This document shows, piece after piece, positions 39,401 through 57,732 of a DNA stretch of 64,000 bases. The notes below the pieces were generated by a model. The model was not told the origin of the DNA. It did not search any database and worked only from the letters and a program-made list of their open reading frames with translations. This stretch comes from Cyanophora paradoxa CCMP329 (lineage: Eukaryota > Plantae > Glaucophyta), in NCBI GenBank assembly GCA_004431415.1, contig QPMI01000477.1, forward strand, positions 124,001-188,000, in the 5' to 3' direction. The stretch's first letter is position 1; each line of letters starts with the position of its first letter. The translations under genes and the position numbers were made by a program.

Positions 39401-40200
39401 GGCGGGTGCCGAGCCGGGAGAGCCTGGCGGAGGAGGCGGCGGCGGCGCGCGAGCAAGTCGAGAGCGTCGGCAAGCGCGCCGGCGACAACCTCGAGGGGCT
39501 GGTGCGCCGGCCGTCGCCGCTCCGCCGCCCCGCGCCCCGCGCGGACTTGAGCTCCTTGCGCGTCGGGCAGCTGGACCGGATCTTCTCGAAGAGCGCGGCG
39601 GCGACCGAACGGCGGCGGGCGACGACGCCGCGCAGCGGCAGCGCCACGCGGCGCGACCCGTCCCCGCCCTCGGCCCGGGCCCGGGCCCGGGCCCGAGCTC
39701 GGGGCGCGAGGCCTTCCTGGATTCGACGCCCTCCAGCGTGGTCCGCCCCGCCCGCCCGCCCCGCCCCGCCCGCCTCGCGCCCGCCCGAGCTGAGCGGCGG
39801 CGGCGGCGGCGGCGGCGGCGCAGCGGGCGGCGTCGTCGCTGCGGACCATCCCGCAGTCGCCGCGGAGCCCCTCCAACCCATCGACGCCCCGCGCAGGTGC
39901 GCGAGCGGCGCGCCGCCCTCGCGCCGCCTGACGCGCGCGCGCAGCCCGCTGAGCCGCAGGGGCGGCCTCACCACCTCCTCGCACCGCGGTGAGCGGGGCG
40001 GGCCCCCGAAGCGCCGGCGCCGCGCCCCTCTGAGCGGCGGTGGCGCAGTGGACGTGTCGATCGCGGGGGGCAGCGGCGGCCACGAGCGCGAGCGCCCGCG
40101 GGCGGCCTCGGCGCGCGTCCTCTTCCCCCAGCCCCGCGACCCTGACTGCGTCTCGCCCCACCTCGAGCCTCTCTGCGGCACCCCGCCCCAGAGCCTGTGA
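33460..40200 (+). CDS. Myosin heavy chain, class VI-like: SH3-like N-terminus, motor, insert-2-like helix, IQ motifs, ER-rich single alpha-helix, low-complexity tail
   Basis: LLALNPY; [13 protein letters not shown]; P-loop [10 protein letters not shown]; [20 protein letters not shown]; [16 protein letters not shown]; [10 protein letters not shown]; [20 protein letters not shown]; LLDEECRLP; [13 protein letters not shown]; HFIRCIK/PN; [11 protein letters not shown]; [15 protein letters not shown]-rich helix at about 38740-39224. Stop at 40200. Confidence 0.93.
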
Positions 40201-40673
40201 CCGGCGGAGAGAGAGATCTAGAGACCTACAGCTGTAGATGGGGCACAGTTTTGAGTACACGCAGCTGAAGAGACTTCAAATTCGAGGACGAAGCTGTAGT
40301 CACGCAGCCTCTCGATGTTTCGAGGGCAGTTTTGATGTATACATGATGAAATCGAAAGGCGTACGCTCTAGTTAGAAGCATAGCTCATGAACAATGAAAT
40401 TGCAATCATCTATCGTATTTACACCTGTACATCACAGTACCGGGGTCCCACCAGTACTAGTACTTCCGCTACACTAGTACTTGCGCATGCCGAAACTGTA
40501 TACGTAGCCATGGCCATGGGTCGTGCACGTGGCCGAGCTCACGCAGGCGGGGTCTTAAGCTTGGCCATGGATCCGGAGGCAGATCGAGCTTCGAGACGTG
40601 TCCTGCCCGAGGGCGCGGAGGCCGGCCTCGAGCTGCATGGCCTACGGCGCTCAGCGGCTTCGGAGCGCATGGC

Positions 40674-41816
40674 CTACGCGTACGGGCCGGGCCGCGGGGC
40701 GTGGCCGAGCTGGCGCGTGCGGGCCTCGAGCTCCGTCTCCAGGCGGGCCTTCTCCGCCTCGAGCCGGTCCCGCTCCTCCCGCATCGCGAAGTACGCCCGC
40801 TTCACGCCCTCGTACTTCGCCAGCGGTACCTGCGCCCCCAGGAGCGTCGACGCCGGCCCCGGCGCGGCAGATCTAGCTATAGAGTTTAAAGCGAGGGCGG
40901 GGGCAGCCGGGGCGGGCGCGGGCGCATGCGCACAGCGCTCGGGTCCTGCTGGGGGACGGCCGGCGCCTGCTGCGCGCCCAGCACGATCGCGAGTGCTCAC
41001 GTGAGTGTTGCCCCCGCGGTCTCTATGGCTTTAGCGCCCCGCGGCGCTCGCCGCACCACACGCATCAAATTAGCAGCGAGCTCGTCCGCCCGCTGGCGCG
41101 CCGCCGCCGCCTCCTGCTCCGCCTGCAGCTGCCGGCAGCGGAACGCGTTATTTTTGCGCCGTTACTCGGCGGCGCGCGTTACTCGCAAGGTGCAGCCGGT
41201 GGAGCGCGAAAATCGCTGCGAAAATTGCTCACCCGGGCGGCCGCAGCGCGGGCCTCCTGCAGCTTCTCCGCGAGCTCGCCCAGCAGAGCCCCCCCCTCGC
41301 CCCGCTCCGCCTCGGCCGCTTCGAGCTGTGCAGGCAGTCATGAACACGATAAGTTTTTTCGAATTCAGAATATCCGCATGAACAGCTCTAGGCCAAATTT
41401 CGTACGAAAAACGCACCGCCTTTTTTAGCGCTCCGGCCGCCGACCTGCGCTCAGTGTAAGGCGCCGGCCGCGAATTCGAAGAGGACGGCTGTATACGTAG
41501 GCACTTTTAGGAGTGGGGTGCGCGCACGCTTCGGCCGCGGCGCCGGCTGCGGGCCTCCCGAGCGCCGCCTTCGCCTTGGCGAGTGCAGCCGCGAAAAGAT
41601 CTTCCGGGCCGGCGGCCGCCCGGAGCGGCCCCGACGCCGACGGTGCACGCGGCTCCGGATCCTGCAGCTGGGCGACCGGGGATCGGAGGGGGCTCACGGA
41701 GGCCTGCAGGGGGCCACGGTCCAGCTGGGGGCCCGGGCCCGAGCTCGAGGGGCCGCCCCCGATCGCGACCGAGCTCGATCTCGATGTCGAGGCGGGGTTC
41801 GAGCCGTTGGGTTCGG

Positions 41817-41878
<62 letters not shown>

Positions 41879-43966
41879 GGCTGCTGCTGCGGACCCGCGG
41901 CCGGAGATGCCGCTCGCACCGATCGCGAGGGCGTGGCGGCCTGCAGCTGGGAGCTCGCGGGGACCTCGGGGCGCGGCGCCGGCGGCGGATGTACATGGGC
42001 GCCTTCGAGCGTGCACGCGGTGCCGCTGGCGGCCGCGGGGCGGAGATCTAGAGGGACGTCGGCGAACAGCCTGCGGCGCCGACCGCCGCTCTTTCGGCTC
42101 CGGTTTCGGCTGCGGCTCCGCCCGGTGCGCCGGGCCCGGTCGCGGCTCCGGCTCCGGCTGCGGTCACGGCCGCGGCCGCGGCTGCGGCTGCGGCTGCGGC
42201 TGTGGCTGCGGCTGCGCCGCGGTCGCTTGCGTCCGGGGCTGCGCTCGCGGCTCCGGCTCCGGCTCCGGCTGAGGTGCTCATGATCGAGGCGGCCGATTTC
42301 GCTGTCGACGTCGTGCGAATGCTTTGATAGAAATCTACAGCTGAGTCAGCGTGTGGACAATGAACGCCCGCAAGCGAAGTTAGAAAGGGCGCACTCGTGA
42401 TCGCCATCGCGGAGCTCGAGCTCGCTGTCGCGGGTTTCGAATTCGAGGCCCTCGTAGTCCTCGGCCTTGAAGCCCTCCGGGCCAACCTGCAGGCGGGAAG
42501 CGGAACGATCATAATTATATGCAACTCGACGTCGACGCTCCGGATCCACATCGGATCGCCGCCCCACATCGAGTGCCCCTCGCGCACTCTCTCAAGATCT
42601 CGGCGGGCGAGCGATGTGCCTCCAAATTCTCCTCCGATTCTCGGGAGATCCACCGCGCGGTCCTGAGGGCGTGTGTCCATATAAATATGCATGACACTCG
42701 AGCCCGATTGAAATAAACGCGCGGCGCGCTTTGAGGGCCCTTTCCGCGTCCTCGCGGCGTCGGAAGAGGACGAGGGCGGCGCGGATGCCGCCGCGGCCTC
42801 CCCGGATCGCCCGCACCGCTTCCACGGCGCCAATTCTGCGGCACAGGAGACCCGTCATGATCAATAATTATAATACTCGCAGGTTGAGCGGATGATATAT
42901 CGCGATATCGATCGACATATAATTCAATTTCGAATTCGCGCGCGCCTGCGGCAGGCGGCGACGACCTCGTGGCGGAGCGGGTCGCGGTTGCCGGGCAGGC
43001 CCTTGAAGCTGCCGACCCACACGACGCGGGCCTGGAACCGGGCGCGCTTGCGGGCATCGGAGTCGGATTCTTCGGGGGGGAGCTGCTGATCGGGGGCGGT
43101 CCGTGGCTGGAATTCGAACTGCGGCCGGCCCATTGCAAGACTGGTCAGGGCGCCGGCGCGAGCGCGAGCTCGAGCTTGAGGAGCAAGAGCATGCGCACCG
43201 TGTCGAAGCCGAAGCCCTGGTTCGCGCTGGCCTCGACCCCCCCGACTCGGACTCGCTTCTCCGCCCTGGCATGGCCGGGGGCCGGAGCGTCATGATCAGG
43301 AGGCAGCGATTGATCTCGAGCTCGATTGCGAATTTTCGAATCCGAATCCAGTAATCATGATTACGAATCGATTGCGAATTTTCGAATCCGCGCTAGCTAT
43401 AGCGCTGCGCACCGGAGCTTCTCGGCGGCCTGGCGGGTCCGCATCTTCACGAAGGCGTAAGTCTTGTTTCTGGCCGTGGCCACGCCCTGGACTTCGCCGA
43501 ATCTGTAAATTGCGCGAATCCGGAGTTAGAGGGTGGCGCGCCGTGCCGGGACGCGATCACGTAAGGCGGGCGCAAATTTTAGAACCCGGACCTGCCGCAC
43601 GCTTCGTGGATCTCCTCCACGCTAACGGCCCTGGAGGTCCACCTTCCGAGCCAAACGACGCGATCGTGCAGCTCCTGCGAGGATTCCTCCAACTCGTTCG
43701 CGAATATTAATGGAGCTTCGGCAGGCCGAGGCGGTCGATCGCGAGGTCGCTGCGCGCGTCAAGATAAGAATAGATCTCGAAGATTAATATTGGAGCGCTA
43801 GCGCAACCGTTGAACGTCGATTCGCGGGAATGCGAACCGCTTCGGCTGCCGGGAGATCGATCCGGAAGCCCTCGCGATCATTCGCGAGCTCGCCTAGGCC
43901 TGCAGCTGCAGCTGGGCCATTGCCGCTGATCATGACGCCGCGGTCCTCTAAATCTTCGCGCTTCAT
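40674..43966 (-). CDS. SR-like paralog A: 2 divergent RRMs, RS domain, polyQ, C-terminal coiled coil
   Basis: ATG 43966 (MKREDLED). RRM1 DRVVWLGRWTSRAVSVEEIHEACGR/FGEVQGVATARNKTYAFVKMRTRQAAEKL. RRM2 RVVWVGSFKG..EVVAACRR/IGAVEAVR..ALVLFRRREDAERALK. RS tract at about 42110-42270. Tail VPLAKYEGVKRAYFAMREERDRLEAEKARLETELE..* at 40674. Confidence 0.7.
41818..41889 (-). repeat. (CAG)20-CCG-(CAG)3 microsatellite encoding polyglutamine in paralog A
   Basis: Uninterrupted CTG run at 41818-41877 on the + strand, then CGG and three more CTG. Confidence 0.95.
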
Positions 43967-45013
43967 AAAGTGCATCGTAATTTATACTCGCAGTCAGGTT
44001 TGCGGGGGCCGTTGCCCTGCGGTTGGCCATGGGCGCGCGAGCGTATACGTAGCACAAGTGAATGCGCACATGCAAAAGCAAATGCGCCTCACCTGGAGAC
44101 TAGTCCCTTAAAGCTTAAAGCTTGCCGTGCGCAGGAGCACTCGCAAATTAAAGCAAAGCTTAAGCTGCGTCTGCGGCGTAGTGCGCTTCAGCACGTGCAC
44201 GCGCGCGCTTGCTTCGAATTGAATTCTGACCGGACCGCGCCTGCACGTGCACGTCGAACCTTGAGAGACTGTGCGCTGGAGCCGCGCGCTTGAAATGAGA
44301 AGTTCTGAAGAATTCGCCGTCGATCTGCGCGGTCGCGCGTGATCATGAGGGCCGTGCGGTCGAGAGGCAGGGGAATATTACTGCTCTTCACATGTACATA
44401 TGCATATGCATGCACGCGAACGGCCGCGCGGTTCAGAGGAACGAGAATGCTCGCCACGCAAGGGGCGGAGCGGCGGCGTTGCTGTTGCAATTGGCAGAAG
44501 GCGGTGAGCGCACTTCCGACCTGCGCCGGCCGCGCTCCAGTTGCGGCGGTGCGCAAATTAAAGAATGCTCGGCTTTAGCTTGAATCGCGACAGTACCCGG
44601 CAGTGCAGCGCAGCTGTACCCTCACACAGCTCGGAAAAAAAGGGTCCTCACAAAGCTAGAGAAATCACAAAATCTCCAGTACTAGCTAGCTAGTATTTCG
44701 AGACCATTTTTGAAATCGGCGGAGCCAATTTTGCGCAATCCTCGATTTTCCCTAGCTCCCCCCCCCCCCTGCCATACAAACCGAGTTGTAGCTTCTCCCT
44801 AGCTTCTCCCCCCCCCCTCCCTGCATACGCATGCGGAAAGCACAAGCTTTCGGCCATCGTATACGTATCGTACCGTAGTGCACGCAGCGTCTCGGCGAAC
44901 ATCTCTGCAACACTAGCCTAGCGTTATCTGATCATATGCATGATATCGATCATGATCATGAGCTTGTAAAATTGAAAGCTTACAAATGAATGCCGTAGTA
45001 TATATTTATATAT

Positions 45014-47907
45014 CTAGCGCTGCAGCTGAGTGCCGTTGCCGAGGGCTTGGAGGCGGGCCTCGAGCTGCTCCTTCTCGGCGACCAAGTCGAAGTAACGTTG
45101 CTTCACGTTGTTGTACTTCTCCAGCGGGACCTGCCCGCGGCGTCGGCCAGAGGGAACTCGAATTCGAATTCGAAGCGCGGGGGCGGGGGCGGAGCGCGGG
45201 CGGGCGCACGACGTTGGCCGAAGCCGAGACCGAGGCCGCCTGCAGCTGCACGTGCGGGTCCGGGTCAGCTGCAGGCGCAGGTGCAGGCGGGGCGGCGCGG
45301 GCGCGCGCCGCACCTTGGAAGCGAGCTCGTCCGCCCGCCGGCGCTCCGCCCCCGCCGCCTCCTCCGCCTGCCGCAGGCCGTGCGCGTTACTTGCAAGGTG
45401 CAGCCGGCGCAGCGCGAAAATCGCTGCGAAAACCGCTCACCCGGGCGGCGGCGGCGCGGGCCTCCTGCAGCTTCTCCGCGAGCTCGCCAAGCAGAGCCGC
45501 CGCCTCGCCCCGATCCGCCTCGACCGTTTCGACCTGCGAAGGCAGCCAATTTTGCAAGTAAAGTTTTGTGAATCTCGGAGTGAGCAGTCTCCAGGCCGGG
45601 TGTGCGAAAATCGCACCGCTTTTCGCAGCGCTAGCGTTCCGAGAGGCTCGGGGAAAGGGGATCCTGAAGGGCCGCCCGCGGCCACCGACGTCGACCTGCG
45701 CGCAAAGTAAGGCCACGAATTCGAAGAGCGCGCGCAGAGCGCACGCTTCGGCCCCGGCGCCGGCTGCGGGCCTCCCGAGCGCCGCCTTCGCCTTGGCGAG
45801 AGCAGCCGCGAAAACGTCTTCCGGGTTGGCGGGCGCCCGGAGCGGCGCCGACGCCGACGGCGGCTCCTGGGGCGCCCGAAGGGGGCTGACGGTGCGCAGC
45901 AGCTCGTCCCGCTGCGGGTCCGAGGAGCCGCCTGCTGCGAGCACCGAGCTCGAGCTCGAGCTGGGGCCGGCGCCGTCCGGTTCGCCACGCCGGGGCTGCA
46001 GCGGGGGCTCCGGAGAGGCCTCCCCCTCCGAGCTCGAGGGCGCGGCGGCCTGCGAGCTCGATCGCGAGGTGCCTTCGAGCTCGGCTCCAGAGCGCGGCGC
46101 AGGCGCCGGCTCCGCCGATGTCGGGCAGCCGGCCGCGGCTGCCCCCGCGGCCGTGGCCGGGGGCTGCCCCGAGGCATCGGGGACACGAGCACCCGCGTCG
46201 GCAGGAGCGGGGCCGGGCGACCTGCCGCGGCTCCGCGGATCCGCAGGCGAGCTCGAGCGCCGCCGGCGCCGGTCGACGCTTTGCGATCGGCTGCGGCTCT
46301 GCCCGGTGCGCCGGGCCCGGTCGCGGCTCCGGCTCCGGCTGCGGTCACGGCCGCGGCCGCGGCTGCGGCTGCGGCTACGGCTGCGGCTGCGGCTGCGCCG
46401 CGGTCGCTTGCGTTCAGGGCTGCGCTCGCGGCTCCGGCTCCGGCTGCGGCTCCGGCTGTGGTGCTTGCGGCGACCGAGTTCCCTGTCGTGCAAATCAGAA
46501 TTATAGTCAGCGTTTAGAATTCGAAGGAGGGCTCTATTGAATGCGGGCAAGAAGCGAGTCTGCAGCCGAAATGACGCACTTGCGATCATGATTGCGCAGG
46601 TCGGTGTCGGGGGCTTCGAATTCGAACTCGAGGCCTTCGTAATTATAAGCCTCGGCCTTGAACCCCTCCGGGCCGACCTGCAGGCGGGAAGCGGGGTACG
46701 TTAGGCTGCCGGCGCTCGCCGCCTTGGGTTGAATGCATCTCGCGCACGTTCTCGCGGTCCCTGCGGACGACGAATGTACCCCCGGACTCCTCATGATCAA
46801 ATTTGACCACGCGGTTCTGAGGGCGAGCATTAAATTAATATTGATACGCCGTCCGAGAGCGCGTGCAAAAAGGGCAGCGCGCCTTGACGGCCCGCTCGGC
46901 GTCCTCGCGGCGCCGGAAGAGGACGAGGGCGGCCATGATGCCCCCGCGGCCGCCCCGGAGCTCCTGCACCGCCTCCAGAGCGCCCATCCTGGGAGGCCGT
47001 GCCCAGGATCGATCAGCATCGCTCCGGCGGACCGAGCGCGCGGTATCGACCGCGGGTAGGCGCGCCTGCGGCAGGCGGCGACGACCTCGTGGCGGAGCGG
47101 GTCGCGGTTGCCGGGCAGGCCCTTGAAGCTGCCGACCCACACGACGCGGGCCTGGAACCGGGCGCGCTCGTCTTCGGGGCGGGGCGGGGCCCGGAAGTTG
47201 TACTGCGCCCCCGCCCCCGGCCGGCCGAGGCTCAGAGGCCCAGGGGCGTGCGCGATATCGAGGGGCGAGGGCACCGCGTTGGGGTTGGAGGGCGTGGCCG
47301 CGTTGACCTCCATCCCCCTCCCCGGGCCGACTCGGAATCGCTTCTCGGCCCTGGCATGGGCGGCGCGGTGGCGGTCAAAGACGCGGCCCGCCGCTGGCTG
47401 GCGCGGTCGCGGTGCAGCGCGCAGCGCACCGGAGCCTCTCGGCGGCCTCGCGGGTCCGCATCAGCACGAAGGCGAACGACCTGTTCTTCGCCTCCTCGAC
47501 GTCCTCGACCTCGCCGAACCTTGCGCGCGCAGCCCGACGTCAGCGCGCCGGCGCCGGCGCCGGCGCCGGGACGGCGGGGGCGCAAGACGGACCTGCCGCA
47601 CGTGTCGCGGATGTCCTCGGGGCACACAGTCCTCGGGGGCCAGGGCCCGAGCCAGACCACGCGCTCGTGCAGCTCCTGCGCGGATTCCTCCGACTCATTT
47701 GCGATCGAATTCGAAGCTTCAGCAGGCGGTCGAGGTCTCTGCGTGCAGAAGATTAAGAATCAATCTTGACGACTAGAGCATAGCCGTTCGACGTCGACCC
47801 ACGGGGCTGCTAACCGCTTCGGCTGCTGGCCATGGCCATGGGCCCGCGAAGCCCTCGAGCTCGCCTGGGCCATCGCCGCTGCCGCCGCGATCCTCTTCGC
47901 GCGTCAT
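45014..47907 (-). CDS. SR-like paralog B: 2 divergent RRMs, RS domain, C-terminal coiled coil
   Basis: ATG 47907 (MTREEDRG). RRM1 ERVVWLGPWPPRTVCPEDIRDTCGR/FGEVEDVEEAKNRSFAFVLMRTREAAERL. RRM2 RVVWVGSFKG../MGALEAVQE..ALVLFRRREDAERAVK. RS tract at about 46260-46465. Tail VPLEKYNNVKQRYFDLVAEKEQLEARLQ..* at 45014. Confidence 0.72.
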
Positions 47908-49007
47908 CTAGTGTATCTTGATCGCGGTCAAGTTTGCGGGGGCCTTTGCCCTGCGGGGCGCGCGAGCTCGAGCTAGTAAGTGAATGCTCGCATGCATACG
48001 ACTAGTAGAACTCAGAACGACGCGAACGCCAGCGCCTCACCCGGAGTCCCTTGCTACAGGAGCACTTGCAGAGCGAAGCTTAAGCTGCGTCTGCGGCGTA
48101 GAGCGCTTTAGCATGCGTGCGCGCGCTCGCTTCAAATTTTGACCGGACCGGTGCCGCGCCGGCGCCAGTGAGCTGGGCCCGCGTGCTTGAGAAGAGAAGT
48201 GCTGAAGGATTCGCCGTCGATCTGCGCGGTCGCGCGTGAGGGCCGTGCGGTCGAGAGCCAGGAGAATGCTCGCCACGCGAACCGGGAAAGGGCGTCGACT
48301 TCGTGGCTAGTTAGAAATACGGTGCGCTAATCTCCGCGCTCTGCCGACCGCGCTGCAGTTGCAGTTCAATTGCAGCGGTGCGCTGGCGCCGAACACTACG
48401 GTTGTACCCGGGCAGAGTGATGCAGCTGTACCCCAACTAGCTGCGATCAAAAAGCAAGCCGCTCACTCGGCACACAAGCTGCGCGCGGCAAGCTGCCGGC
48501 AAAGCATGCAGGTGCGCTCCGGAGCTCAGGCGCGGCCGTGTCGACAGGTACCGAGAGCGCGATTTCAACCTATATATAGCTAGGCCTCTGCAGCGGCCGC
48601 GGCAGCGGCTGCGTACGCGTGCGCACGCGTCGCGCTCGCCCTCGCCGCCGCCTTTCTGTGCAGCTGCGTCTTCGACGGCGCCGAGTGAGCTCGAGGGCCG
48701 GGGGACGACGGCGCCTGCGCCGCCGTGCACGTGGCCATGGGCACCGCCGTCCTCGACAGACCAGCTCGCACCTACGACCGGCTCGGCCCCAGAAGGACTC
48801 AGCCCCGGCTCGAACCCGCACTAAGCGGGGCCGCCGGTCTGCCCGCGCGCGGGCCGGAGCCTCCTCTATAGCTAGCTAGACCTCGAGCGCTAGCCCCGAC
48901 CACGTGCACCCACCCAATTGCAACCTTCGTTTGTGCTTCTGTTAAAAAAGTAGAATCAAAAAGTTCGCTTGCTCAGGAGCTAAATTCGCGGCGCCAGCTC
49001 GCTTCGG

Positions 49008-49725
49008 TCACGGGGCGTGCGCGAGCGCCGGGCCCGGGGGGCGGCCCTCGGCCTCGCGGAGGCGGGCCTCGAGGAGCTCCTTCTCGGCCCGCAAGTCGAA
49101 GTAGGCGCGCTTCACGTTCTCGTACTTCTCCAGCGGCACCTGCGGCCGCCTTGAATCAAGGGGCGCCCGCGATGGCGCGCTCCGCTGCGAGCCGCGGTGT
49201 CGGACGCACGGTCTTGTGGTCCTGCTGGAGCGGGGCCGCCTGAAGCTGCGCGCGCGGGTCCGTGTCCGGGTCAGCTGCAGGCGCAGGCGCAGGCGGGGCG
49301 GCGCGGGGGCACGCGCGCCGCACCTTCGAAGCGAGCTCGTCCGCCCGCCGGCGCTCCGCCGCCGCCGCCTCCTGCGCCTACCGCAGGCCGCACGCGTTAC
49401 TCGCAAGGTGCAGCCGGCGCAGCGCGAAAATCGCTGGGAAAACCGCTCACCCGGGCGGCGGCGGCGCGGGCCTCCTGCAGCTTCTCCGCGAGCTCGGCCA
49501 GCAGAGCCGCAGCCTCGCCCCGATCCGCCGCGATCGCTTCGACCTGCGCAGGCAGCCAAGGTAATTTTTATGAGGAGTAACTAAAAGAGACAGGCCTCGG
49601 GCGTCGCACCGCCCTCCGCAGAGCCTCGGCTCCTGAAGGGCCGCCCGCGGGCCTGCGCGCGATCTCAGGCCGGGGAGGGCGCGCCGTTCTCGGTTCACGC
49701 GGAGCGCGCGCACGCTCCGGCCGAC

Positions 49726-49756
<31 letters not shown>

Positions 49757-52214
49757 GCCGCCCGAGCAGGGCCCGGGCCGCCCGCATCGCCGCCGGGAGG
49801 GCGTCCTCTCGGCCCGGGCCCCGCCAGAGCGACAGCGAGAGCCCCCGCCTCGGCCTGCGGAGCGGGCTCACCCCGCCGCCCTCCGGCTCCTCCCGCTGCG
49901 CCCCGGAGGACCCCGCGCCGCCCTCATGCGGCGACGCCGCCCGCGCCGCGGGCTGGGGCGTGAGGGCCATCGGAGAGGCCGGGGGCCCCTCGGGCGCGCT
50001 GGGGGGGCCGGGCCCGGGGCGCCGTCGCCGGCCCGCTGCTGGAGCTGGCGGGAGGGGGCGAGGGCGGGCGGCCCCGGGGCTCTCCGGCCGGGCCCTCGGG
50101 CTCCCGCTCCCGCCCCCTCGGCCCGCTCGGCCCGGCCCGGCCCCGGCTTCTGCCGGCGCTCCCGCTGCGGCTGCGGCTGCGGCTGCGACGCCGGCCGTCC
50201 CGCGGCCGCTTGCGATCCCGGCTGCGGCTCCGGCTCCGGCTGCGGCTGCGGCTCCGGCTCCGGCGGGTCCGGTCCCGGTCCCGAGTCCGGGGCTCCGGCG
50301 CTTGCGGGCTGTGCTCCGGCGTGGGGCTGCGCTCGCGGCCGCCCTGCTTCTGCCACCTGCGGCGCCTCAGAGGACGACGGGCGCGGGCGCTCGCGGCGGC
50401 GGCGCACTCCTCCTCAATGCCCTCCACGCGCTCGTACGCCTCGTTTCTGAGTCCGGGGTTGCCCTGCGAAAGCCGCCGGGTCACGAGGGCGCGGGCGGGA
50501 AGCGGAGGGTGTGGTGGCACACCCCCTTGCGGTCCTCCCTCGCGATGCCGTGGCGGCGCCCCTCGTCGAACACGACCTTCCACCGCTGCGAACCGAATCG
50601 TTCGGCAAGGGCGCGCGCGGGGGCGGGGGCTCGAGGGGCGGGGGCGGGGGCGGGGGCCGCGGCTCGCCTTGACGAGCCGTGCGGCGTCCTCGGCGCGGCG
50701 GAAGAGGACGAGGAGCGACACGAGATCGGAGGGGGAGCCCTTGGCCCGCATCCCCTCCACCGCCTCGAGGGGCCCGTACCTGGCGAGGCGCGCGTGGGCG
50801 TGCGGCAGGGGCGCGGAGGGGCCTGGAGCGGGGGAGGGGAGAGAGGGAGAGGGGGTACCGCACCGCCTGCAGACGAGAGCGATCTCGCGGAGGCAGCGGG
50901 CCGGCACGTCGACGATCCCGCGCTGCCCCTCCACCACGAAGTTCCCGATCCAGACCAGCCGCCCGCCGAAGCTGCCCCCGGAGCCCGAGTCGCCGGCCGG
51001 CTCCGCGGGCGGCTGCCCGTGGGCGCTCGGGTGCCCGGCGGATCCGCTCGGAAGGGCGGAGGGCTCCCAGGACCCCCGGGGCCGAAAGCCGGCCTGCGGA
51101 GGGGGCGGGTAGTCGGGCCGGGCGGGGGCGGGGTCCTCCGGGGGGCGGGGCGCGCACGAGGGCGCGCTCGTGCGGCGTGCGCGTCATGACCCAGAAGGAC
51201 GAGGATCCGATCCGGAGGGAGATCGACTCCGTCTTCCCCGGCCTGGATCGGTCAGGGGCGGGACCAGGCGCGGCCGGCGCCGGGCGGAGCGGTGCACGTG
51301 CGCACCAGGGGCGGCGCATGAGCATCAGCGCGTGGGAGCCGCTCTTCCCCAGCTGGACGTCCTCCACCTCCCCGATCCTGCCCGAGGCGCGCGTCATGAC
51401 ATCGATGAGCTGGCCCGGGGCGGCGGGGCCCAGGGGCGCGCGCGCACCCCGCGCGGTTCAGCGCGTCGAGGAGCTCCCGCTCCGTGAACGTCCTCGCGGC
51501 CCAGAAGCCGATCCAGACGAGGCGCTCGCGCAGGCTTTCCCGCGGGCGCGCCTCGCCCTCCCGCGCGTCGCCCCCCGGGGCCTCCCGCGGCCACTGGACC
51601 TGCGCATGCGCGCTAGTTTCTACGGGCACCACACGCGCCGCGCGAGCAAGCTGCGGCGAACCTTCCCTTGCGGCTGCGCATCGCCGTCAACCGCCAGGCT
51701 GGCGCGCAGCGCGACGTCGCATCCCTGCACGGCACGGCGCCGGCGCGCGTTATTAAGCGCCGGGCGGTCGCTCCTGGAAAGCGGACGATGCGCACGTTCA
51801 GCTTGCTGCGCTCAATCTGACGCCTGCGCGAGGAACGCGTACGGTTAACCAGGACGAATCTGGACGGAGCGATAGCGCCTGGCGCGCAGCGCAGCGCGGC
51901 GGCGGCTGTTCTTACGGTACCTGGCTTCCGCTGCCGTGTCTGCGTCTTTGAAATGCATCTTGATACAAGTCCAGTCACTGCGCGGTTTCCGTTCACTCGC
52001 CGGTCGGGTTCGCGCGGGAAACCTGAACTCGCACCTGTCATACTCCTCGCTCACGGGCTCAAACTTCTGTCTCAGCTCGCCTCGCAGCGTTGACAGGTCC
52101 ACCTGCGCAGTGTGCAAGCGGTGCGCAGTGCAAGCTTCAGCGGGGGCAGCGAGCGGCCGAGCGGAGCACGCGCACCTGAGCCGATGGAGGCCATTCGACC
52201 ACAACAGAGCTCAT
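49008..52214 (-). CDS. SR-like paralog C: degenerate N-terminal RRM-like segment, 2 divergent RRMs, RS domain, coiled coil
   Basis: In-frame exon chain from ATG 52214: MSSVVVEWPPSAQ/VDLSTLRGELRQKFE../DWTCIKMHFKDADTAAEA... Then ERLVWIGFWAARTFTERELLDALNRAG/..IGEVEDVQLGKSGSHALMLMRRPW and RLVWIGNFVVEG..EIALVCRR/YGPLEAVEG..LVLFRRAEDAARLVK. RS tract at about 50160-50290. Tail VPLEKYENVKRAYFDLRAEKELLEARLRE..* at 49008. Confidence 0.72.
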
Positions 52215-52478
52215 CGCACCGCGCGCCGCTTCAAGTTGACCAGTTCTTATGGTTTTTTTTCAACGAAACACGTACCCAGGCGCATCGCTGCGGATCGCTT
52301 TGCGCACCCGCACCAGCGCGCGCTGCAGAGTTGACATTCTGACGGTAAGCACCTGTGTTCGTGCGAAGCGCCCCGGGCACGTTAGAGCCGCGCACAGCGC
52401 GCGCAGCAGCGCTTGCAATCGCTGGCGCCGCGCCGCGCCTGATCATGACGCCGCGCCTGATCATGATCGATAATAGAC

Positions 52479-55400
52479 ATGTCAAAGAAGAGCTCGAGCA
52501 CGTGCAACAGCGACGACGCGCGACCGCGCCCGGCGCCGGCGCTGCGGAAGCATGCGCAGCAGGTTCGTATTCGCATGCGCAGCTGTAGCAGCGCGTTTTT
52601 TCAACGTTGCAAATTGAACGATCCTCCGCTGCCGCCACACATATACAGTTCGAAAGCGGGCTTGATATCGATCATGAGGAAGAGACACAAGAATTCGAAA
52701 GCCTGCGCGAGCGCCTCGTCTGGATCGGCTTCTGGGCCGCGAGGACGTTCACGGAGCGGGAGCTCCTCGACGCGCTGAGCCGCGCGGGGTGCGCGCGCGC
52801 CCCTTAGCCTCGCCGCCCCACCTTCCGCACCCGTGGCCAGCTGCAGCTGACGCGCGCCTCGGGCAGGATCGGGGAGGTGGAGGACGTCCAGATGTCGAAG
52901 AGCGGCTCCCACGCGCTGATGCTCATGCGCCGCCCCTGGCGCGCACCGCGCCGCCCGGCCCGGTCCGGCGAAGGTTGCGACTCGAAGCGTTTTCGATCAT
53001 TAATTAACGTCGAACCGCGGTATCGATAGCGATCGATATTAATATTCATCTTTACATTCATGATCATACACCCCCGCAGGCCGGAGAAGGTCTGCTCCTT
53101 CAGCTTTCGATTCGGATCCATGACCTTTGAGGTCAAGGCGCGCCCTCCGCGCGAAGACGTCGCCGTGCGCATGCGTCCTGCGATTCCCTCTCGCTCTAGC
53201 TAAATATGGGCCTCTTTATAACCCGACCCCGACGTCGATGTCGGTCTCGCCCGTTTCCAAATCCGCGCAGCTCGAATTCCGTCCTCGGACAAGGTCACCC
53301 GCGGCCGGCTCCAGCAAGCACGGGGACAGGGGCAGCTGCAGCGTGAGCTCCTCTGGCCAGCTGCAGGAAGCAGGCAAGCTCTGCGAATCCAAGAAGGCGA
53401 AGCATGCGCGTCTGGTTTGGATAGGGCACTTCGTCGTAGACGGGAGGCGCGGGCCGGTCGCCGCCGCTTCTCTCCGCGAGATCGCCGTCGTCTGCAGGCG
53501 GTCCGGCCCCGCACACGCAGCCATACGCTCCCCCCCGCGCCTCGCCTCTCTAGATCTGAGCCGGCCCCTGGCGCCCGGATCCTCCTCCCTCCAGATACGG
53601 CCCCCTCGAGGCGGTGCAGGGGATGTGGGTGAGGGGCAATGAGGCGGAGATCACCGCGGCCCTCGTCCTCTTCCGCCGTGCCGAGGACGCCGCGCGGATC
53701 AGACGGGTGCGCTTCTAATATATATAATTTGCGCTCTCTGCGTGCACGAGCGATTTTGCGAGCGATCTTGCGAATTTTTTATTATGATCAAATTAAACGC
53801 GATTGTGTTCGCGTTAAAATATTCACAGGACTCGGAGGTTGCGTTCGGCGGGGGCCGTGGCCACTTCGTCGCGAGGGAGGACCGCAGAGAGGTCCGTAGT
53901 ACTCCGTACGCGCGCCTCGAGCTCCGAATATATGTGTATCAATATCAATTTAATAAAACCGGATCGCGGACTTGAGCTCCGAACCCCGGCCCCGTGGCCG
54001 GCCAAGCGGGCCTCGGCCTACCCCGGCCCCGTGGCCTTGCGCTCCCGCGATTGTTTGAATATTAATTCAGTATTCGCAGGGGGACTTTGTCTTCAGCAAG
54101 ATCGCGTACGAGGGCCTGGACGAGATCGACGAACAGTGCGCGTCTGCATCCCGCAACGCTCGCGACGTCTTGCGCACAGCTGAAGACGTCCGGATCCGCG
54201 CCGTGCCCCGGAAGGTGGCGGAGGGAGCTCGAGCTGGAGGGATCCGCGGCCGGGGGCCGAAATCTGCAGAACGCTGACCTGACGTCGACGTCGACGTCGA
54301 CTTCGACGCCGGCGCCATCGCATGCACAGCTGCAGGCGACGTCGGCCGCTACTAAAACTCCTGATCGCGATCGCGAGCGTGGCGCCGGCGATCCCTCCGG
54401 CCCGAGCGCGAGCGTGAGCTCGAGCTCGCAGACTTCCGGGGGGCAAGGGATCCGGAGCAGCGACATGGGCAAGCGTCTGGTCTGGATCGGGAGCTTCTCT
54501 GTCGACGGGCGATTCCGTCCGGCCCCAGCCTCCTCGATCCGCGATCTCGCCCTCGCCTGCAGGCGGTTTGCAATCTGCGTCGAGTTCTCTGCCGATTAGT
54601 TCAATCCGCGCATCTCACCTCGAGCCCTCCGACGTCGACGCCGCTTACATCAGATTCGGTCCCCTGGAGGCGATCGAGGGGGCGCGATCGCGCGCCAGGG
54701 GCAACCCGTCGGCGTCCAGATCTGAGATGGCAGCCGCCGCCGTTCTCTTCCGAAGGGCGGAGGACGCTGCCCGGCTTCTGCAGGTGTCCATTCAGCGGTT
54801 TCAGTTTTTAAATAAACTATAAATTGATCAAACCCTTATTCTGCAGCACTATCTAGAGAACTGCGGCTGACAGGCGTGCGCCTGCCGCATGCGCAGAATC
54901 CGCATGTTAAATTCGATTTCGAAGAGGGCCGCTGTGAAGGTCTTGCTCGGGGGGATCGCAGGGCGGTCCGCGCCTCTTTTATCTCTGGCCTTCGAAATCG
55001 AATATATATAGGATTTGTCGCCATCTACATTTGGGGTTTTATGGTGATCATGATCGACTGTTCTCCCAGGCGTTTTCGAGTTTCGAATTCAGCGAAAGTG
55101 CCTTCAGATTTGCACAGGAGGTCGAGGACGAACGCGAGTGCGCTGCTTCGTCCCTCGCGCATACGCATTCGAAGCTTATAATAAAAGTTAGACAAATCTC
55201 GATCGCGAATTGATCATGAGCTTGACGACGCACGGTAGGTGGCGAAGGTCGACGTCGAGGGGTAGGAAGCGGAGCCCGCCGGCCCCTGGAATTCGAGACG
55301 TCGACCGGAGAGACGTCGACCGGATCCGGAGTTCTACGAATACTCCTTCCGGTCGCAGCCGCAGCCGCAGCCGCAGCCGCAGCCACAGTCGAAAGACTAA

Positions 55401-56915
55401 ACGTTCGCGGCGCAGCCGCAGCCGCAGCCGCAGCCGCAGCCGCTCCCGCACCCGCCCTGTATCGAGGAGCCGGTCGCGGGTCCAGCGCGCCGAGCCAGCT
55501 AGCGCTGCCAGCGCTGTTAATATTGCAAGCGACGCTGACAGCGCTAGCGGCGCCCAGGGAGATCTAGACGCGCCCTCTCGCGACCATGGCCCCGTCGCGC
55601 CCCAGCGCCTATCGTTCTCCGAGACGCAGGGGCCAGCCTCCCCGCTCGGCTCGCCCGTGGCCCGTGCGATTTCTCCGGATCCGCCTGCACAGCCGGGCGA
55701 CACCGATGCCGCGACCGGCGTCGATATTGATGCCGTGGATGGCGACTTGTACGGCCGCGGCAGCTCGCTCTCGGATCTGCAGCGGGGCTCGAGCCAGCTG
55801 CAGGGGGCATCGGTGCCGATATCGGCGTCGATCTCCACGTCGCTCCAGGCGGCCGCGGGCGCGCAGGAGACTCTGGCGGCGGTCCTCGGCAGGGCACACG
55901 CGCTGCTCGGGACGCCTGCAGCTGCAGCTGCTCCGGTCGCAATCGCTTCCACCTCGAGCTCGTGCGCGGATTCAATTAATATTATAGTTTGATGCCTCTC
56001 TTGGGGAATTCGAAGGCACATTTTGCGGCCAATATCCCTTCCAGGATTTCGACATCGATGGCGGGCGGACCTCACGGACCTGCGCATGCAGCTGCAGCTG
56101 GACTCGCCATCGACGGCGCCGCGGCCTCGCTGCGCCGAGCGGTGCGAGCTGCGCAGCTTTAGATTTTACACGCACAGCGGATCTGGCTGTGGGGCATCGC
56201 GATCGCAGTTTAATTTAATTTGTTGCACTGCCGAATTTGAACCGAGGGCGCTCCGGATCCAGGCGCAGGAGATGGACGCCGTGGAGGAGCGGGGCGGGGC
56301 GGGCTCGGCGGCCCTGCTCGAGGCGGGCGCCCTGGTTGCCGGCCTGCTCGAGCAGCTCGACCACGCCCGCGCCGCCGCCGCCCGAGTGCGCGCCCGCGCT
56401 CGACTTGCTTGCTTTAAATTTAATTTTGCGCGAACGCGGGAATATCTAATCGAACATAGAAGAGCCGCGTCGAATTTGATTGCCTTCAATCTGAATAGTT
56501 CTTGCAGGGGGAGCAGGAGGCCGCGTCCGAGCGGCAGCGGGCCAACGACCTCGACTTGCAGGTGCCCGGGAGCCCGCTTCACCCCCGCCCCCGCCCCGCG
56601 GCCGCCTCCGCCGCGCCCTCGCGACCGCCGGGGCGCGCAGCTGCAGGTGGCGACGGCATCCCTCCAGCGGGACCAGAGCTCGCAGTCGGTGCGGCGCCGG
56701 CGCCGGCGCAGATCCTCGAGGTCTACTAGGCTAGATCTCAACGCGAGCGAGACTCAAGCTTATGTTGACGGCAGGTGCCGCTGGAGAAGTACGAGGGCGT
56801 GAAGAGCGCGTACTTCAAGGTGCGAGAGGAGCGGGACCGGCTCGAGGCGGAGAAGGCCCGCCTGGAGACGGAGCTCGAGACGGAGCTCGGCCACACCCCC
56901 CGGCCGGGCCCGTAG
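52479..56915 (+). CDS. SR-like paralog D (inverted): 3 divergent RRMs, RS domain, coiled coil
   Basis: ATG 52479 MSKKSSST..HAQQ/FESGLD..ERLVWIGFWAARTFTERELLDALSRAG. The second unit RLVWIGHFVVDG (about 53410) and third unit RLVWIGSFSVDG (about 54473) are each followed by [YF]GPLEA..VLFRRAEDAAR. RS tract at about 55350-55480. Tail VPLEKYEGVKSAYFKVREERDRLEAEKARLETELE..* at 56915. Confidence 0.7.
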
Positions 56916-57075
56916 GCCGGCGCCACGCGCTCCGCGGCCGCTGCCTCGTATCGTACTGTACATATGCATGCACGTATACGTATAAGTATTGTAGCCTGCA
57001 GTGATCGGCACATGCCGCAGGCAGCTGCAGCTGCAGCTGCAGCTGCAGCAGCCTGCAGCTGATCCAGATCGAAAC

Positions 57076-57277
57076 GACTTTGTGTAGCGGCCTCAAGTGC
57101 CTTCGCTTCAAAAAGCGTCAAATTCGGAATTTCAAGTTTCTCAGCAAAATATTCGAATTCATTCAGAGGGAGGCTGGCCATGGCAAAGGACTTTGTAGCG
57201 GCTTCAAGTGCCTTCGGATTCGCTTGAAAAAGCTTCAAGTTCCTGAGCAAATAGAATATTCGGATTCATTCAGAGGC
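57076..57277 (+). repeat. Diverged direct repeat, two copies about 110 bp apart
   Basis: TGTAGCGG[C/T]..CAAGTGCCTTCG...TTCAAGTT.CT.AGCAAA...ATATTCG.ATTCATTCAGAGG occurs at about 57083-57169 and 57194-57277. Confidence 0.8.
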
Positions 57278-57462
57278 CACAAAAGGGTACCCCCCGTCCC
57301 CCCCCCCCCCTTCCTTCCGCAGGCGGTCGACGGCGAGGGCGAGTTGGCGGTGGAGGGTGGGGCGGGGGCGGGCGCGGAGGGGTACGGGGCTGAGGCGGCC
57401 TTCGGCGCGGACGGCCTCGCCGCCGCCGCCGCCTTTGCCTCCGAGCACCTGTCAAGCTATGA

Positions 57463-57561
57463 CAAGCTCCTGGCGCGCGCGGGCCCGAGCCCTCGGAGCT
57501 TGACATACATAAGAGCTTGACATATGCCCTCAGAGGAGGGCCCGCGCGCGCCAGGAGCTTG
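57463..57561. repeat. Perfect 24-bp inverted repeat with a 51-bp spacer containing GAGCTTGAC direct repeats
   Basis: CAAGCTCCTGGCGCGCGCGGGCCC (57463-57486) and its exact reverse complement (57538-57561). Confidence 0.9.
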
Positions 57562-57732
57562 ACGTATATAAGCTAGATACACGTCATAGCTACTGGGCTT
57601 CCGCTCCGCTCTGGCGGAACTCGGCCTTATCTACATAACTACTAATACTACGAAATCAATGAACCGATCGATGGCCGTGCACGCCCCGCGCACCTCCGGC
57701 GCACGCCGGCGCCGGCGGGGACGGGGCCGGGG

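Follow-up and report, generated by a model that had tools for sequence, protein, structure and literature searches.

What kind of protein is encoded by a cluster of intron-rich genes in the glaucophyte Cyanophora paradoxa, and does it belong to any of the described families of RNA-binding proteins? Glaucophytes are one of three primary-plastid lineages and, to our knowledge, hardly any work has been devoted to RNA processing in their nuclei. We have analyzed a window of 64,000 nucleotides (positions 124,001 to 188,000 of contig QPMI01000477.1), where positions 40674-56915 contain four paralogous genes: A, B and C are read from the minus strand, D is read from the plus strand, and C and D stand head to head (Table 1). 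The four are linked by pairwise blastn and by repeat families, and the three tandem copies and the inverted one lie exactly where the initial annotation had placed them. A fifth paralog, g24627 (P0005), is found on another contig of the same organism. With moderate confidence, our analysis favors a multigene family specific to C. paradoxa that encodes SR-like RNA-binding proteins and numbers at least five genes, of which this cluster contains four.

Genes A to D form a cluster well beyond chance, given that exons are more conserved than introns (63-90% versus 30-60% identity in the genomic alignment of A and B) and that spliced RNA contigs were found. Transcription and splicing are established for gene C at least, where 2 samples yielded contigs about 1.2 kb long in which the exons are joined via GT-AG introns of 57-97 nt, and weakly for gene D, covered by a single contig at depth 2. 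The introns had been described as rich in GC-AG borders and the family as possibly suited to them. Both ideas fail here: the ten RNA-confirmed introns are all GT-AG, and a GC donor appears in 2 of the 28 annotated introns with a readable donor.

Table 1. Coordinates of the genes and their features in the window.
Feature	Gene	Positions	Strand	Basis or remark
Gene	A	40674..43975	-	Exon cores by local alignment to P0001 exons
Gene	B	45014..47907	-	EukProt tig00020816_g14121.t1 (P0001, 565 aa), exon-by-exon mapping
Gene	C	49008..52259	-	5' exons from RNA contigs; downstream exons placed by homology
Gene	D	52479..56915	+	EukProt tig00020816_g14123.t1 (P0002, 721 aa), mapped here
RNA-joined exons	C	52173-52259, 52035-52099, 51920-51977, 51795-51822, 51660-51723, 51447-51597, 51305-51376, 51158-51241	-	RNA contigs
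3' introns (GT-AG)	D	56142-56262, 56386-56507, 56562-56640	+	Single low-depth RNA contig
RRM unit 1 (predicted)	B	47275..47669	-	P0001 residues 55-135; most canonical unit, RNP1 aromatics retained
RRM unit 1 (predicted)	A	43199-43680	-	Homology
RRM unit 1 (predicted)	C	51158-51545	-	Homology
RRM unit 1 (predicted)	D	52700-53164	+	Homology
RRM unit 2 (predicted)	B	46745..47160	-	P0001 residues 150-240; pseudo-RRM-like, RNP2 Trp kept, RNP1 aromatics lost
RRM unit 2 (predicted)	A	42585-43040	-	Homologue
RRM unit 2 (predicted)	C	50526-50970	-	Homologue
RRM unit 2 (predicted)	D	53394-53891 and 54474-54968	+	Homologues
Linker-RS intron	A	42394-42302	-	GTGCG donor; 51-101 nt in the four genes
Linker-RS intron	B	46579-46483	-	GTGCG donor
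Linker-RS intron	C	50407-50357	-	GTGCG donor
Linker-RS intron	D	55138-55238	+	GTGCG donor
RS tract	A	42094-42270	-	59 aa, 63% of residues in RS/SR dipeptides
RS tract	B	46218..46457	-	80 aa, 55% of residues in RS/SR dipeptides
RS tract	C	50143-50331	-	63 aa, 44% of residues in RS/SR dipeptides
RS tract	D	55327-55581	+	85 aa, 45% of residues in RS/SR dipeptides
Helical module (predicted)	B	45314..45530	-	Two exons upstream of tail; alignment of paralogs
Helical module (predicted)	A	41233-41322, 41072-41122	-	Homologous exons
Helical module (predicted)	C	49451-49540, 49324-49377	-	Homologous exons
Helical module (predicted)	D	56263-56385, 56508-56561	+	Homologous exons
Terminal exon	B	45014..45130	-	Invariant V-P-L-x-K-Y-x-x-V-K-x-x-Y-F-x4-E-x3-L-E-A
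Terminal exon	A	40674-40829	-	Homologue
Terminal exon	C	49008-49139	-	Homologue
Terminal exon	D	56775-56915	+	Homologue

The genes share a common order, with RRM-like units followed in all four by an acidic linker, an RS tract, a disordered spacer and a helical part. Gene A, for which no public model was retrieved, has units 1 and 2, the linker, the RS exon, a spacer with a poly-Q run, the helical module and the tail; its putative start codon, at about 43966-43975, was placed from a weak resemblance to how P0001 begins. Gene B also has two units. In gene C both units are preceded by an extra, RNA-supported N-terminal segment that looks like an RRM (start codon at about 52214), and linker, RS, spacer, helices and tail come after them. 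Gene D has three units because unit 2 was duplicated (unit 1, unit 2 and unit 2', then RS, spacer, helices and tail).

As had been proposed, the repeated units are RRM folds, a conclusion drawn from structure prediction and fold search together with sequence matches that are marginal. At the sequence level, unit 1 of gene B scored 19.3 bits against Pfam RRM_1 (E 0.001, cut-off 20.7) and retrieved the RBFOX RRM among PDB sequences at E 0.003, while P0002 and P0005 gave no RRM_1 match at E <= 0.01, and single exons gave none. The profile of unit 2 gave weak PDB matches (E 0.2), the best of them RRMs, and the hhalign comparison of unit 2 with unit 1 marked them as homologous (probability 95.9%, E 5.7e-9). 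The AF2 model, which covered both units of gene B (P0001:45-262), had an overall pLDDT of 79.8 and values of 83-95 within the units (90-95 in unit 1, 85-93 in unit 2), each of them predicted as beta1-alpha1-beta2-beta3-alpha2-beta4. Foldseek found 252 PDB matches to this model at E <= 0.001, and the 50 listed were all RRM proteins. The top ones, hnRNP A2/B1, PUF60, CUGBP1, UP1 and NONO/SFPQ, spanned both units with E from 6e-10 to 3e-8.

The motifs read from the exons agree with those reported before, RNP2 being V-W-[LIV]-G and the RNP1-like stretch K-T-Y-A-F-V in A, R-S-F-A-F-V in B and G-S-H-A-L-M in C and D. The RNP2 Trp appears in every unit of the five paralogs except unit 2 of P0005. It had been taken as an oddity, a view that does not survive comparison with the SPOC- or Surp+CID-bearing RRM_1 proteins retrieved here, which read [ILV]-W-[ILV]-G; P0011 and P0007 have the same Trp. 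Unit 1 of A and B retains the RNP1 aromatics (positions 3 and 5), which unit 1 of C and D and every unit 2 lack; unit 1 of P0005 has one Tyr left. These losses make it doubtful that the majority of the domains bind RNA in the canonical way. Unit 1 would bind single-stranded RNA, with the aromatics of both RNP1 and RNP2 kept in A and B, and unit 2 may be a pseudo-RRM that contacts RNA or proteins in a non-canonical manner.

SR proteins, in the structural definition that Manley and Krainer reportedly gave in 2010, have one or two N-terminal RRMs and, further downstream, an RS domain that measures 50 aa or more, shows consecutive RS/SR repeats and has an RS content above 40%. The predicted RRM units here are N-terminal to the RS tract, and the tracts of A-D fall within these values (59-85 aa, 44-63%) only if the RS exon is coding; that of P0005 has 24 aa. 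The order of RRMs followed by an RS tract in open frame, already noticed in the initial annotation, was found in all four genes, and in each of them a conserved short intron precedes the tract and leaves it in frame. The public models tell a different story. P0001 omits the RS tract and in P0002 an intron of 822 nt removes the third exon of unit 2' together with the tract; if these models were right, B and D would not be SR-like. The tracts would then be intronic hexanucleotide microsatellites, and the proteins a succession of RRMs, disordered region and coiled coil with no RS domain. At the DNA level they are indeed imperfect (GCGGCT)n arrays, and no RNA contig could be placed over any RS tract, including that of gene D, where repeats are masked and expression is very low. 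We regard this explanation as unlikely. The introns that skip the tracts would be of about 275 and 822 nt, versus 49-188 nt in the other 27 annotated or confirmed introns with readable length. In all four genes a conserved phase-2 intron of 51-101 nt, its donor reading GTGCG, lies between the acidic-linker exon and the RS exon and keeps the frame across the junction. Besides, A, B and D continue in the RS frame into the conserved spacer that follows, the P0005 model has its RS annotated as coding sequence, the tracts of A and B align over about 200 nt with no indels and 91% identity, and the gene C contigs would, by arithmetic, end inside the tract. From the sequence, the public models of B and D probably splice out the RS tract wrongly through mis-predicted long introns, and we retain the RS tract as a likely part of the proteins.

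Downstream of the spacer, the C-terminal ~110 residues are predicted to form two long helices, the last one with an invariant motif. In the homologous part of P0005, AF2 gave one helix of 77 residues (pLDDT 96-98) and a second of 27 residues that begins at the Pro of the motif, in line with the helical tail proposed after the RS domain. Hydrophobic residues at 3-4 spacing are directly readable in the terminal exon. The motif described before was recovered in the four genes and in the fifth paralog (15 invariant columns over the five), with four residues after the YF instead of the five first reported. No match to the tail was found in Pfam, PDB or the Atlas. The family had been called dimerizing, a property that the helices, predicted with confidence, might allow; a homodimer prediction stayed below the required mark.

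Among known systems, SRSF1-type two-RRM SR proteins and the plant SR subfamily share with this family a canonical-looking RRM, a second RRM without RNP1 aromatics and a downstream RS tract (>=50 aa and >40% in the four genes of the cluster). In contrast to SRSF1, alignment of unit 2 shows another helix alpha1 sequence without the pseudo-RRM heptapeptide, whose absence had been pointed out, the RS tract is preceded by an acidic aromatic linker, and it is internal, with about 250 more residues behind it that include the conserved helical module. No orthology to a named SR subfamily emerged: the 14 matches of the exhaustive HMMER search include no SR protein, and the ten non-family ones whose Pfam domains were scanned show no resemblance to one. 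In DBHS proteins the NOPS domain comes directly after RRM2 and the coiled coil immediately next. These proteins (NONO, SFPQ, PSPC1) are among the best fold matches and also the weak sequence matches, and they resemble the family in having tandem RRMs, the second of them non-canonical, as well as a long coiled coil, which oligomerizes in DBHS. SPEN/FPA-type and U2SURP-type RRMs share the RNP2 reading [ILV]-W-[ILV]-G, where the aromatic position is taken by Trp. The weak HMMER matches included a SPOC-bearing protein (P0011) as well as a NOPS-bearing one (P0004, NOPS at E 2.5e-20). We could be dealing with divergent members of DBHS, of the SPEN/FPA type or of a canonical SR subfamily. This seems to us very improbable, since no NOPS, SPOC, Surp or CID domain was found in P0001, P0002 or P0005, the similarity stays at the generic RRM level (P0004 at E 8e-5; non-family matches at 1e-4 to 1e-6 versus 1e-22 within the family), and the tail has no match in the databases mentioned. 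Moreover, unlike in DBHS, the RS tract and a disordered stretch of over 150 residues stand between the RRMs and the helices, and the C-terminus is predicted to be all helical, in contrast to the C-terminal SPOC of SPEN/FPA proteins. In SAFB-like proteins an RRM is followed by charged, helical, oligomerizing Arg/Glu-rich coiled-coil regions; the likeness is one of general description, and they differ in domain order and in the SAP domain, missing here, with no sequence relation detected.

The distribution agrees with a lineage-specific family of its own, as had been suggested. Exhaustive HMMER over 1.84 billion representative proteins gave 14 matches and no family-level relatives outside C. paradoxa; the ten non-family matches scanned against Pfam were all RRM_1 proteins, and the best non-family E was 1.7e-6. 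A metagenome scan for the family was negative and Pfam has no model for it. The family would have been born by tandem and inverted duplication, with gene conversion among the copies still under way. Paralog identity is 35-45%, and dN/dS is about 0.5 between A and B, while C and D give a per-exon ratio of about 0.9, values that bear out the fast evolution proposed and could indicate relaxed constraint. The ratio near 0.9, the low coverage of gene D and the RNP1 aromatics lost from unit 1 of C and D would all fit decaying, functionless duplicates in a birth-and-death array where only one or two genes are important. There is little probability, in our opinion, that this applies: each of the four genes has 13-16 exons in open frame and its splice sites intact, many positions of the tail and helix exons are invariant, exon conservation exceeds that of introns, and gene C is well expressed.

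From architecture alone we infer that these proteins are RNA-processing regulators, with a likely role in the regulation of splicing or in mRNP formation. By analogy with SR proteins, the RS tract would be phosphorylated, direct the proteins into the nucleus and to speckles, and contact other RS proteins, while the helical tail may support homo- or hetero-oligomers of the paralogs or the docking of a common partner. Genuine RRM/RS proteins could also act outside splicing, for example in transcription-coupled 3' end processing, RNA-granule scaffolding or chromatin-associated RNA binding. Many non-splicing proteins contain RS tracts, and a condensate scaffold would fit the long spacers predicted as disordered, the poly-Q run and the putative oligomerizing helices. 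Nothing specific speaks against such a role, but it is less parsimonious than an SR-like one given the RRM-RRM-RS order, and we judge it improbable. Within the SR-like reading, a more speculative proposal, to which we give a low probability, is that the VPLEKY..VK..YF helix and the long helix preceding it are an undescribed oligomerization or docking module. Fast-diverging paralogs with different RRM specificities would then assemble combinatorially into hetero-oligomeric SR-like regulators, a glaucophyte-specific way of handling splice-site choice amid very short, GC-rich introns.

The family is a lineage-specific variation on the well-known SR-like theme; it is no new kind of system and opens no new category of biology. 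At least two public models apparently lose the RS domain, which is relevant to any comparative census of SR proteins. If true, a private, tandemly amplified and gene-converting RRM-RRM-RS family with its own tail would mean that SR-like regulators are re-invented and expanded per lineage, and it would offer a handle on splicing control in a genome with GC-rich introns of 50-120 nt.

By pairwise blastn and repeat finding we identified four copies of one gene of ~3-4.5 kb between 40674 and 56915. As the initial annotation had described, three of them (A, B and C) form a tandem on the minus strand and the fourth (D) is inverted on the plus strand. C and D stand head to head. With the longest open frame of gene B as query, a word search retrieved a single protein match, P0001, identified by exact look-up as tig00020816_g14121.t1 of the glaucophyte Cyanophora paradoxa (EukProt EP00741). 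The model of gene D is g14123 (P0002), and a fifth paralog, tig00000383_g24627 (P0005), is located on a different contig. Homologous-protein word searches gave only the gene's own model, with low-complexity words crowding the candidate list, and the Pfam scan of single open reading frames found no match because introns split every domain. There was no match either in an Rfam scan of 39000-58500, and none of the papers found by our literature search describes a family of this kind in Cyanophora. The GC content is 70-80% across the window and lower, 63-70%, over the cluster (40000-58000) vs 72-81% in both flanks; the introns and spacers of the cluster contain AT-richer simple sequence.

We mapped four presumed RNA runs from two samples on 6,000 letters covering gene D and the 5' part of gene C. 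RNA contigs of ~1.2 kb connected eight exons from the 5' half of C across seven introns of 57-97 nt, and a single low-depth RNA contig spanned three introns towards the 3' end of D. These ten introns in C and D are all GT-AG, with the donor mostly GTGCG, and the GC-AG introns once proposed as a feature here are thus not borne out. Read from its start codon, the spliced frame of gene C stays open, and between A and B the identity is 63-90% in exons and 30-60% in introns. Pseudogenes giving no spliced transcripts had been considered at the outset; spliced RNA from C and, at low depth, from D, the open frame of C and the higher identity of exons than introns therefore make these real genes, neither chance frames nor dead copies. 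C and D are divergent, and only ~220 nt separate the first RNA-supported exon of C from the start codon annotated for D; so short a gap suggests that they share one bidirectional promoter. In the same RNA runs the coverage was ~10-19x for C vs ~2x for D, despite their adjoining 5' ends.

Coordinates of the genes and of the features discussed in the text (window positions)
Feature	Gene	Position	Strand
Paralog	A	40674-43975	-
Paralog	B	45014-47907	-
Paralog	C	49008-52259	-
Paralog	D	52479-56915	+
Region mapped with RNA runs	C, D	51101-57100	
Start codon (near)	C	52214	-
Extra N-terminal segment	C	51660-52259	-
Gap between divergent genes	C/D	52259-52479	
Perfect (CTG)24 array, spacer	A	41818-41890	+
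Region where public model removes RS tract	B	46222-46579	
Region where public model removes RS tract	D	54784-55605	
Short intron before RS exon	A	42394-42302	-
Short intron before RS exon	B	46579-46483	-
Short intron before RS exon	C	50407-50357	-
Short intron before RS exon	D	55138-55238	+
Match of abundant RNA contigs to helix/tail exons	D	56384-56900	
Identical bases	A vs B	42940-43048 vs 47060-47168	
Inverted repeats, two stretches	C vs D	51298-51539 vs 52697-52946	

For B and D the gene anatomy follows the public models as mapped to the window, and for A and C it follows coordinate-anchored homology. In searches and folds, exon references plus P0001, P0002 and P0005 took the place of our joined models of A and C and of the RS-containing models of B and D. 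Each repeated unit consists of three short exons, the first carrying R-x-V-W-[ILV]-G, the second G-x-[LV]-E-A-[VIM] followed by a beta3 strand and E-D-A, and the third encoding a short strand. There are two units in A and in B, unit 2 is duplicated in D, and C has two units plus an extra N-terminal segment of ~80 aa in five RNA-confirmed exons, which is unique to C within the window and has no homologue upstream of A, B or D. By eye this segment looks RRM-like: a strand with Trp at its end and a helix are followed by an RNP1-like strand and a helix rich in Asp and Ala. Downstream of the units the genes encode a linker that is acidic and aromatic, an arginine/serine-rich (RS) tract and 150-250 disordered residues, and they end in two helix exons followed by the tail exon. 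The spacer of gene A includes a poly-Q run encoded by a perfect (CTG)24 array in plus-strand sense, absent from B, C and D.

At the level of sequence, the evidence that the units are RRMs is marginal. Pfam RRM_1 was approached only by unit 1 of gene B (19.3 bits, cut-off 20.7), which also matches RBFOX RRMs with an E of 0.003. An exhaustive HMMER search of the two-unit region against 1.84 billion representative proteins gave 14 matches at E <= 0.001, three of them Cyanophora family members; all ten non-family matches scanned against Pfam were ordinary RRM_1 proteins, the best E being 1.7e-6. Unit 2 is related to unit 1 (hhalign probability 95.9%, E 5.7e-9), and its profile reached a best E of only ~0.2 against PDB sequences. 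AlphaFold2, run on the two units of gene B with the paralogs as alignment, produced two clean beta-alpha-beta-beta-alpha-beta domains (mean pLDDT 79.8). With both domains aligned, Foldseek matched this model to the tandem-RRM structures of hnRNP A2/B1, PUF60, CUGBP1, UP1 and NONO/SFPQ (E 6e-10 to 3e-8). Within the limits of prediction, the units would fold as the RRMs initially proposed. The RNP1 aromatics are kept in unit 1 of A and B and lost in unit 1 of C and D and in every unit 2 copy, so all the units that lack them would behave as pseudo-RRMs. The Trp in RNP2 had been taken as distinctive of the family. Actually, profile positions 1-4 also read [ILV]-W-[ILV]-G in RRM_1-positive proteins outside the family that the same HMMER search retrieved, among them a SPOC protein (P0011) and a Surp+CID protein (P0007).

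The EukProt models of B and D splice out the RS tract within introns of ~275 nt (B) and 822 nt (D), the D intron also taking out the final exon of the duplicated RRM. We think that this is a prediction error, and the reasons are as follows. The other annotated or confirmed introns with a readable length measured 49-188 nt in 27 out of 27 cases. Each of the four linker exons ends in phase 2, followed by a GTGCG donor, and an acceptor 51-101 nt downstream joins the RS exon in frame. In A, B and D no stop separates the RS frame from the conserved spacer behind it, an RS stretch is present as coding sequence in the P0005 model, and the RS tracts of A and B are 91% identical with no indels over ~200 nt. 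Besides, by arithmetic on their lengths, the RNA contigs of gene C would end within the RS tract, where a repeat could be expected to interrupt the assembly. Read as coding, the predicted tracts are 59-85 aa long, with RS/SR dipeptides covering 44-63% of the residues, and would fit the way in which Manley and Krainer (2010) reportedly defined SR proteins by structure. It is likely that RS domains are systematically mis-annotated in the Cyanophora paradoxa genome.

The tail motif that had been noticed in the last exon is indeed shared by all paralogs, with 15 invariant columns among the five, and the consensus is V-P-L-x-K-Y-x-x-V-K-x-x-Y-F, then E-x3-L-E-A-x-R-L after a spacing of four residues, not the five first read. 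AlphaFold2 of the last 113 residues of P0005 gave a 77-residue helix and a 27-residue helix starting at Pro (mean pLDDT 90); by direct reading, the last helix has hydrophobic residues at 3-4 spacing across ~3.5 heptads. A two-copy complex prediction of P0001:462-565 scored 0.24, under the mark of 0.32. Oligomerisation through the modelled tail is plausible. No relative of the tail was found in Pfam, the look-alikes in the ESM Atlas had a best score of 0.88 with nothing usable, and Foldseek against the PDB gave no match, so the alternative of a described family with the same tail found no candidate in these three resources. A metagenome match to the motif was rejected as chance. Its only confirmed locus, a 692-aa bacterial ORF on metagenome contig MDTB01052099.1 that by eye resembles a RecG-like helicase, shares the nonapeptide P-L-E-K-Y-E-N-V-K (matched region 1436-1507), a caution against motif-only searches for the tail. 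Some RNA contigs are abundant (depth 45-77) but match gene D over only 20-130 nt of its helix and tail exons and then diverge; their source is probably better-expressed paralogs elsewhere, or gene A, with near-identical helix and tail exons.

The copies have diverged as a mosaic. A and B are identical over a 96-nt stretch of exon, with dS values of 0.3-0.7 in the adjacent exons, and the inverted repeats of C and D are 96-97% identical, introns included. This mosaic identity in both pairs points to gene conversion that is still ongoing among the copies. At the nucleotide level A and B share 109 identical bases within genes otherwise 65-80% identical. The dN/dS was ~0.5 between A and B (201 codons) and ~0.9 per exon between C and D, where the per-exon values are valid and the concatenated one is unusable, one exon pair being mis-framed. 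These values agree with the fast evolution first suggested. The lineage-specific character proposed with it also held, as the HMMER search of the 1.84 billion proteins, among which the presence of other glaucophytes is uncertain, found no family member beyond Cyanophora paradoxa.

Like the two-RRM SR proteins, this family would work as RRMs plus an RS tract, although it shows no orthology to the SR subfamilies, and behind its internal RS tract there is a conserved helical module. Tandem RRMs and a coiled coil are common to DBHS proteins, which require a NOPS domain, whereas the cluster family is without it. In the same way, the Trp in RNP2 is common to SPEN/FPA proteins, but these require a SPOC domain that is missing here. 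We have therefore filed the family outside every named one, as a lineage-specific variant of SR-like proteins whose SR-like function we infer from architecture alone.
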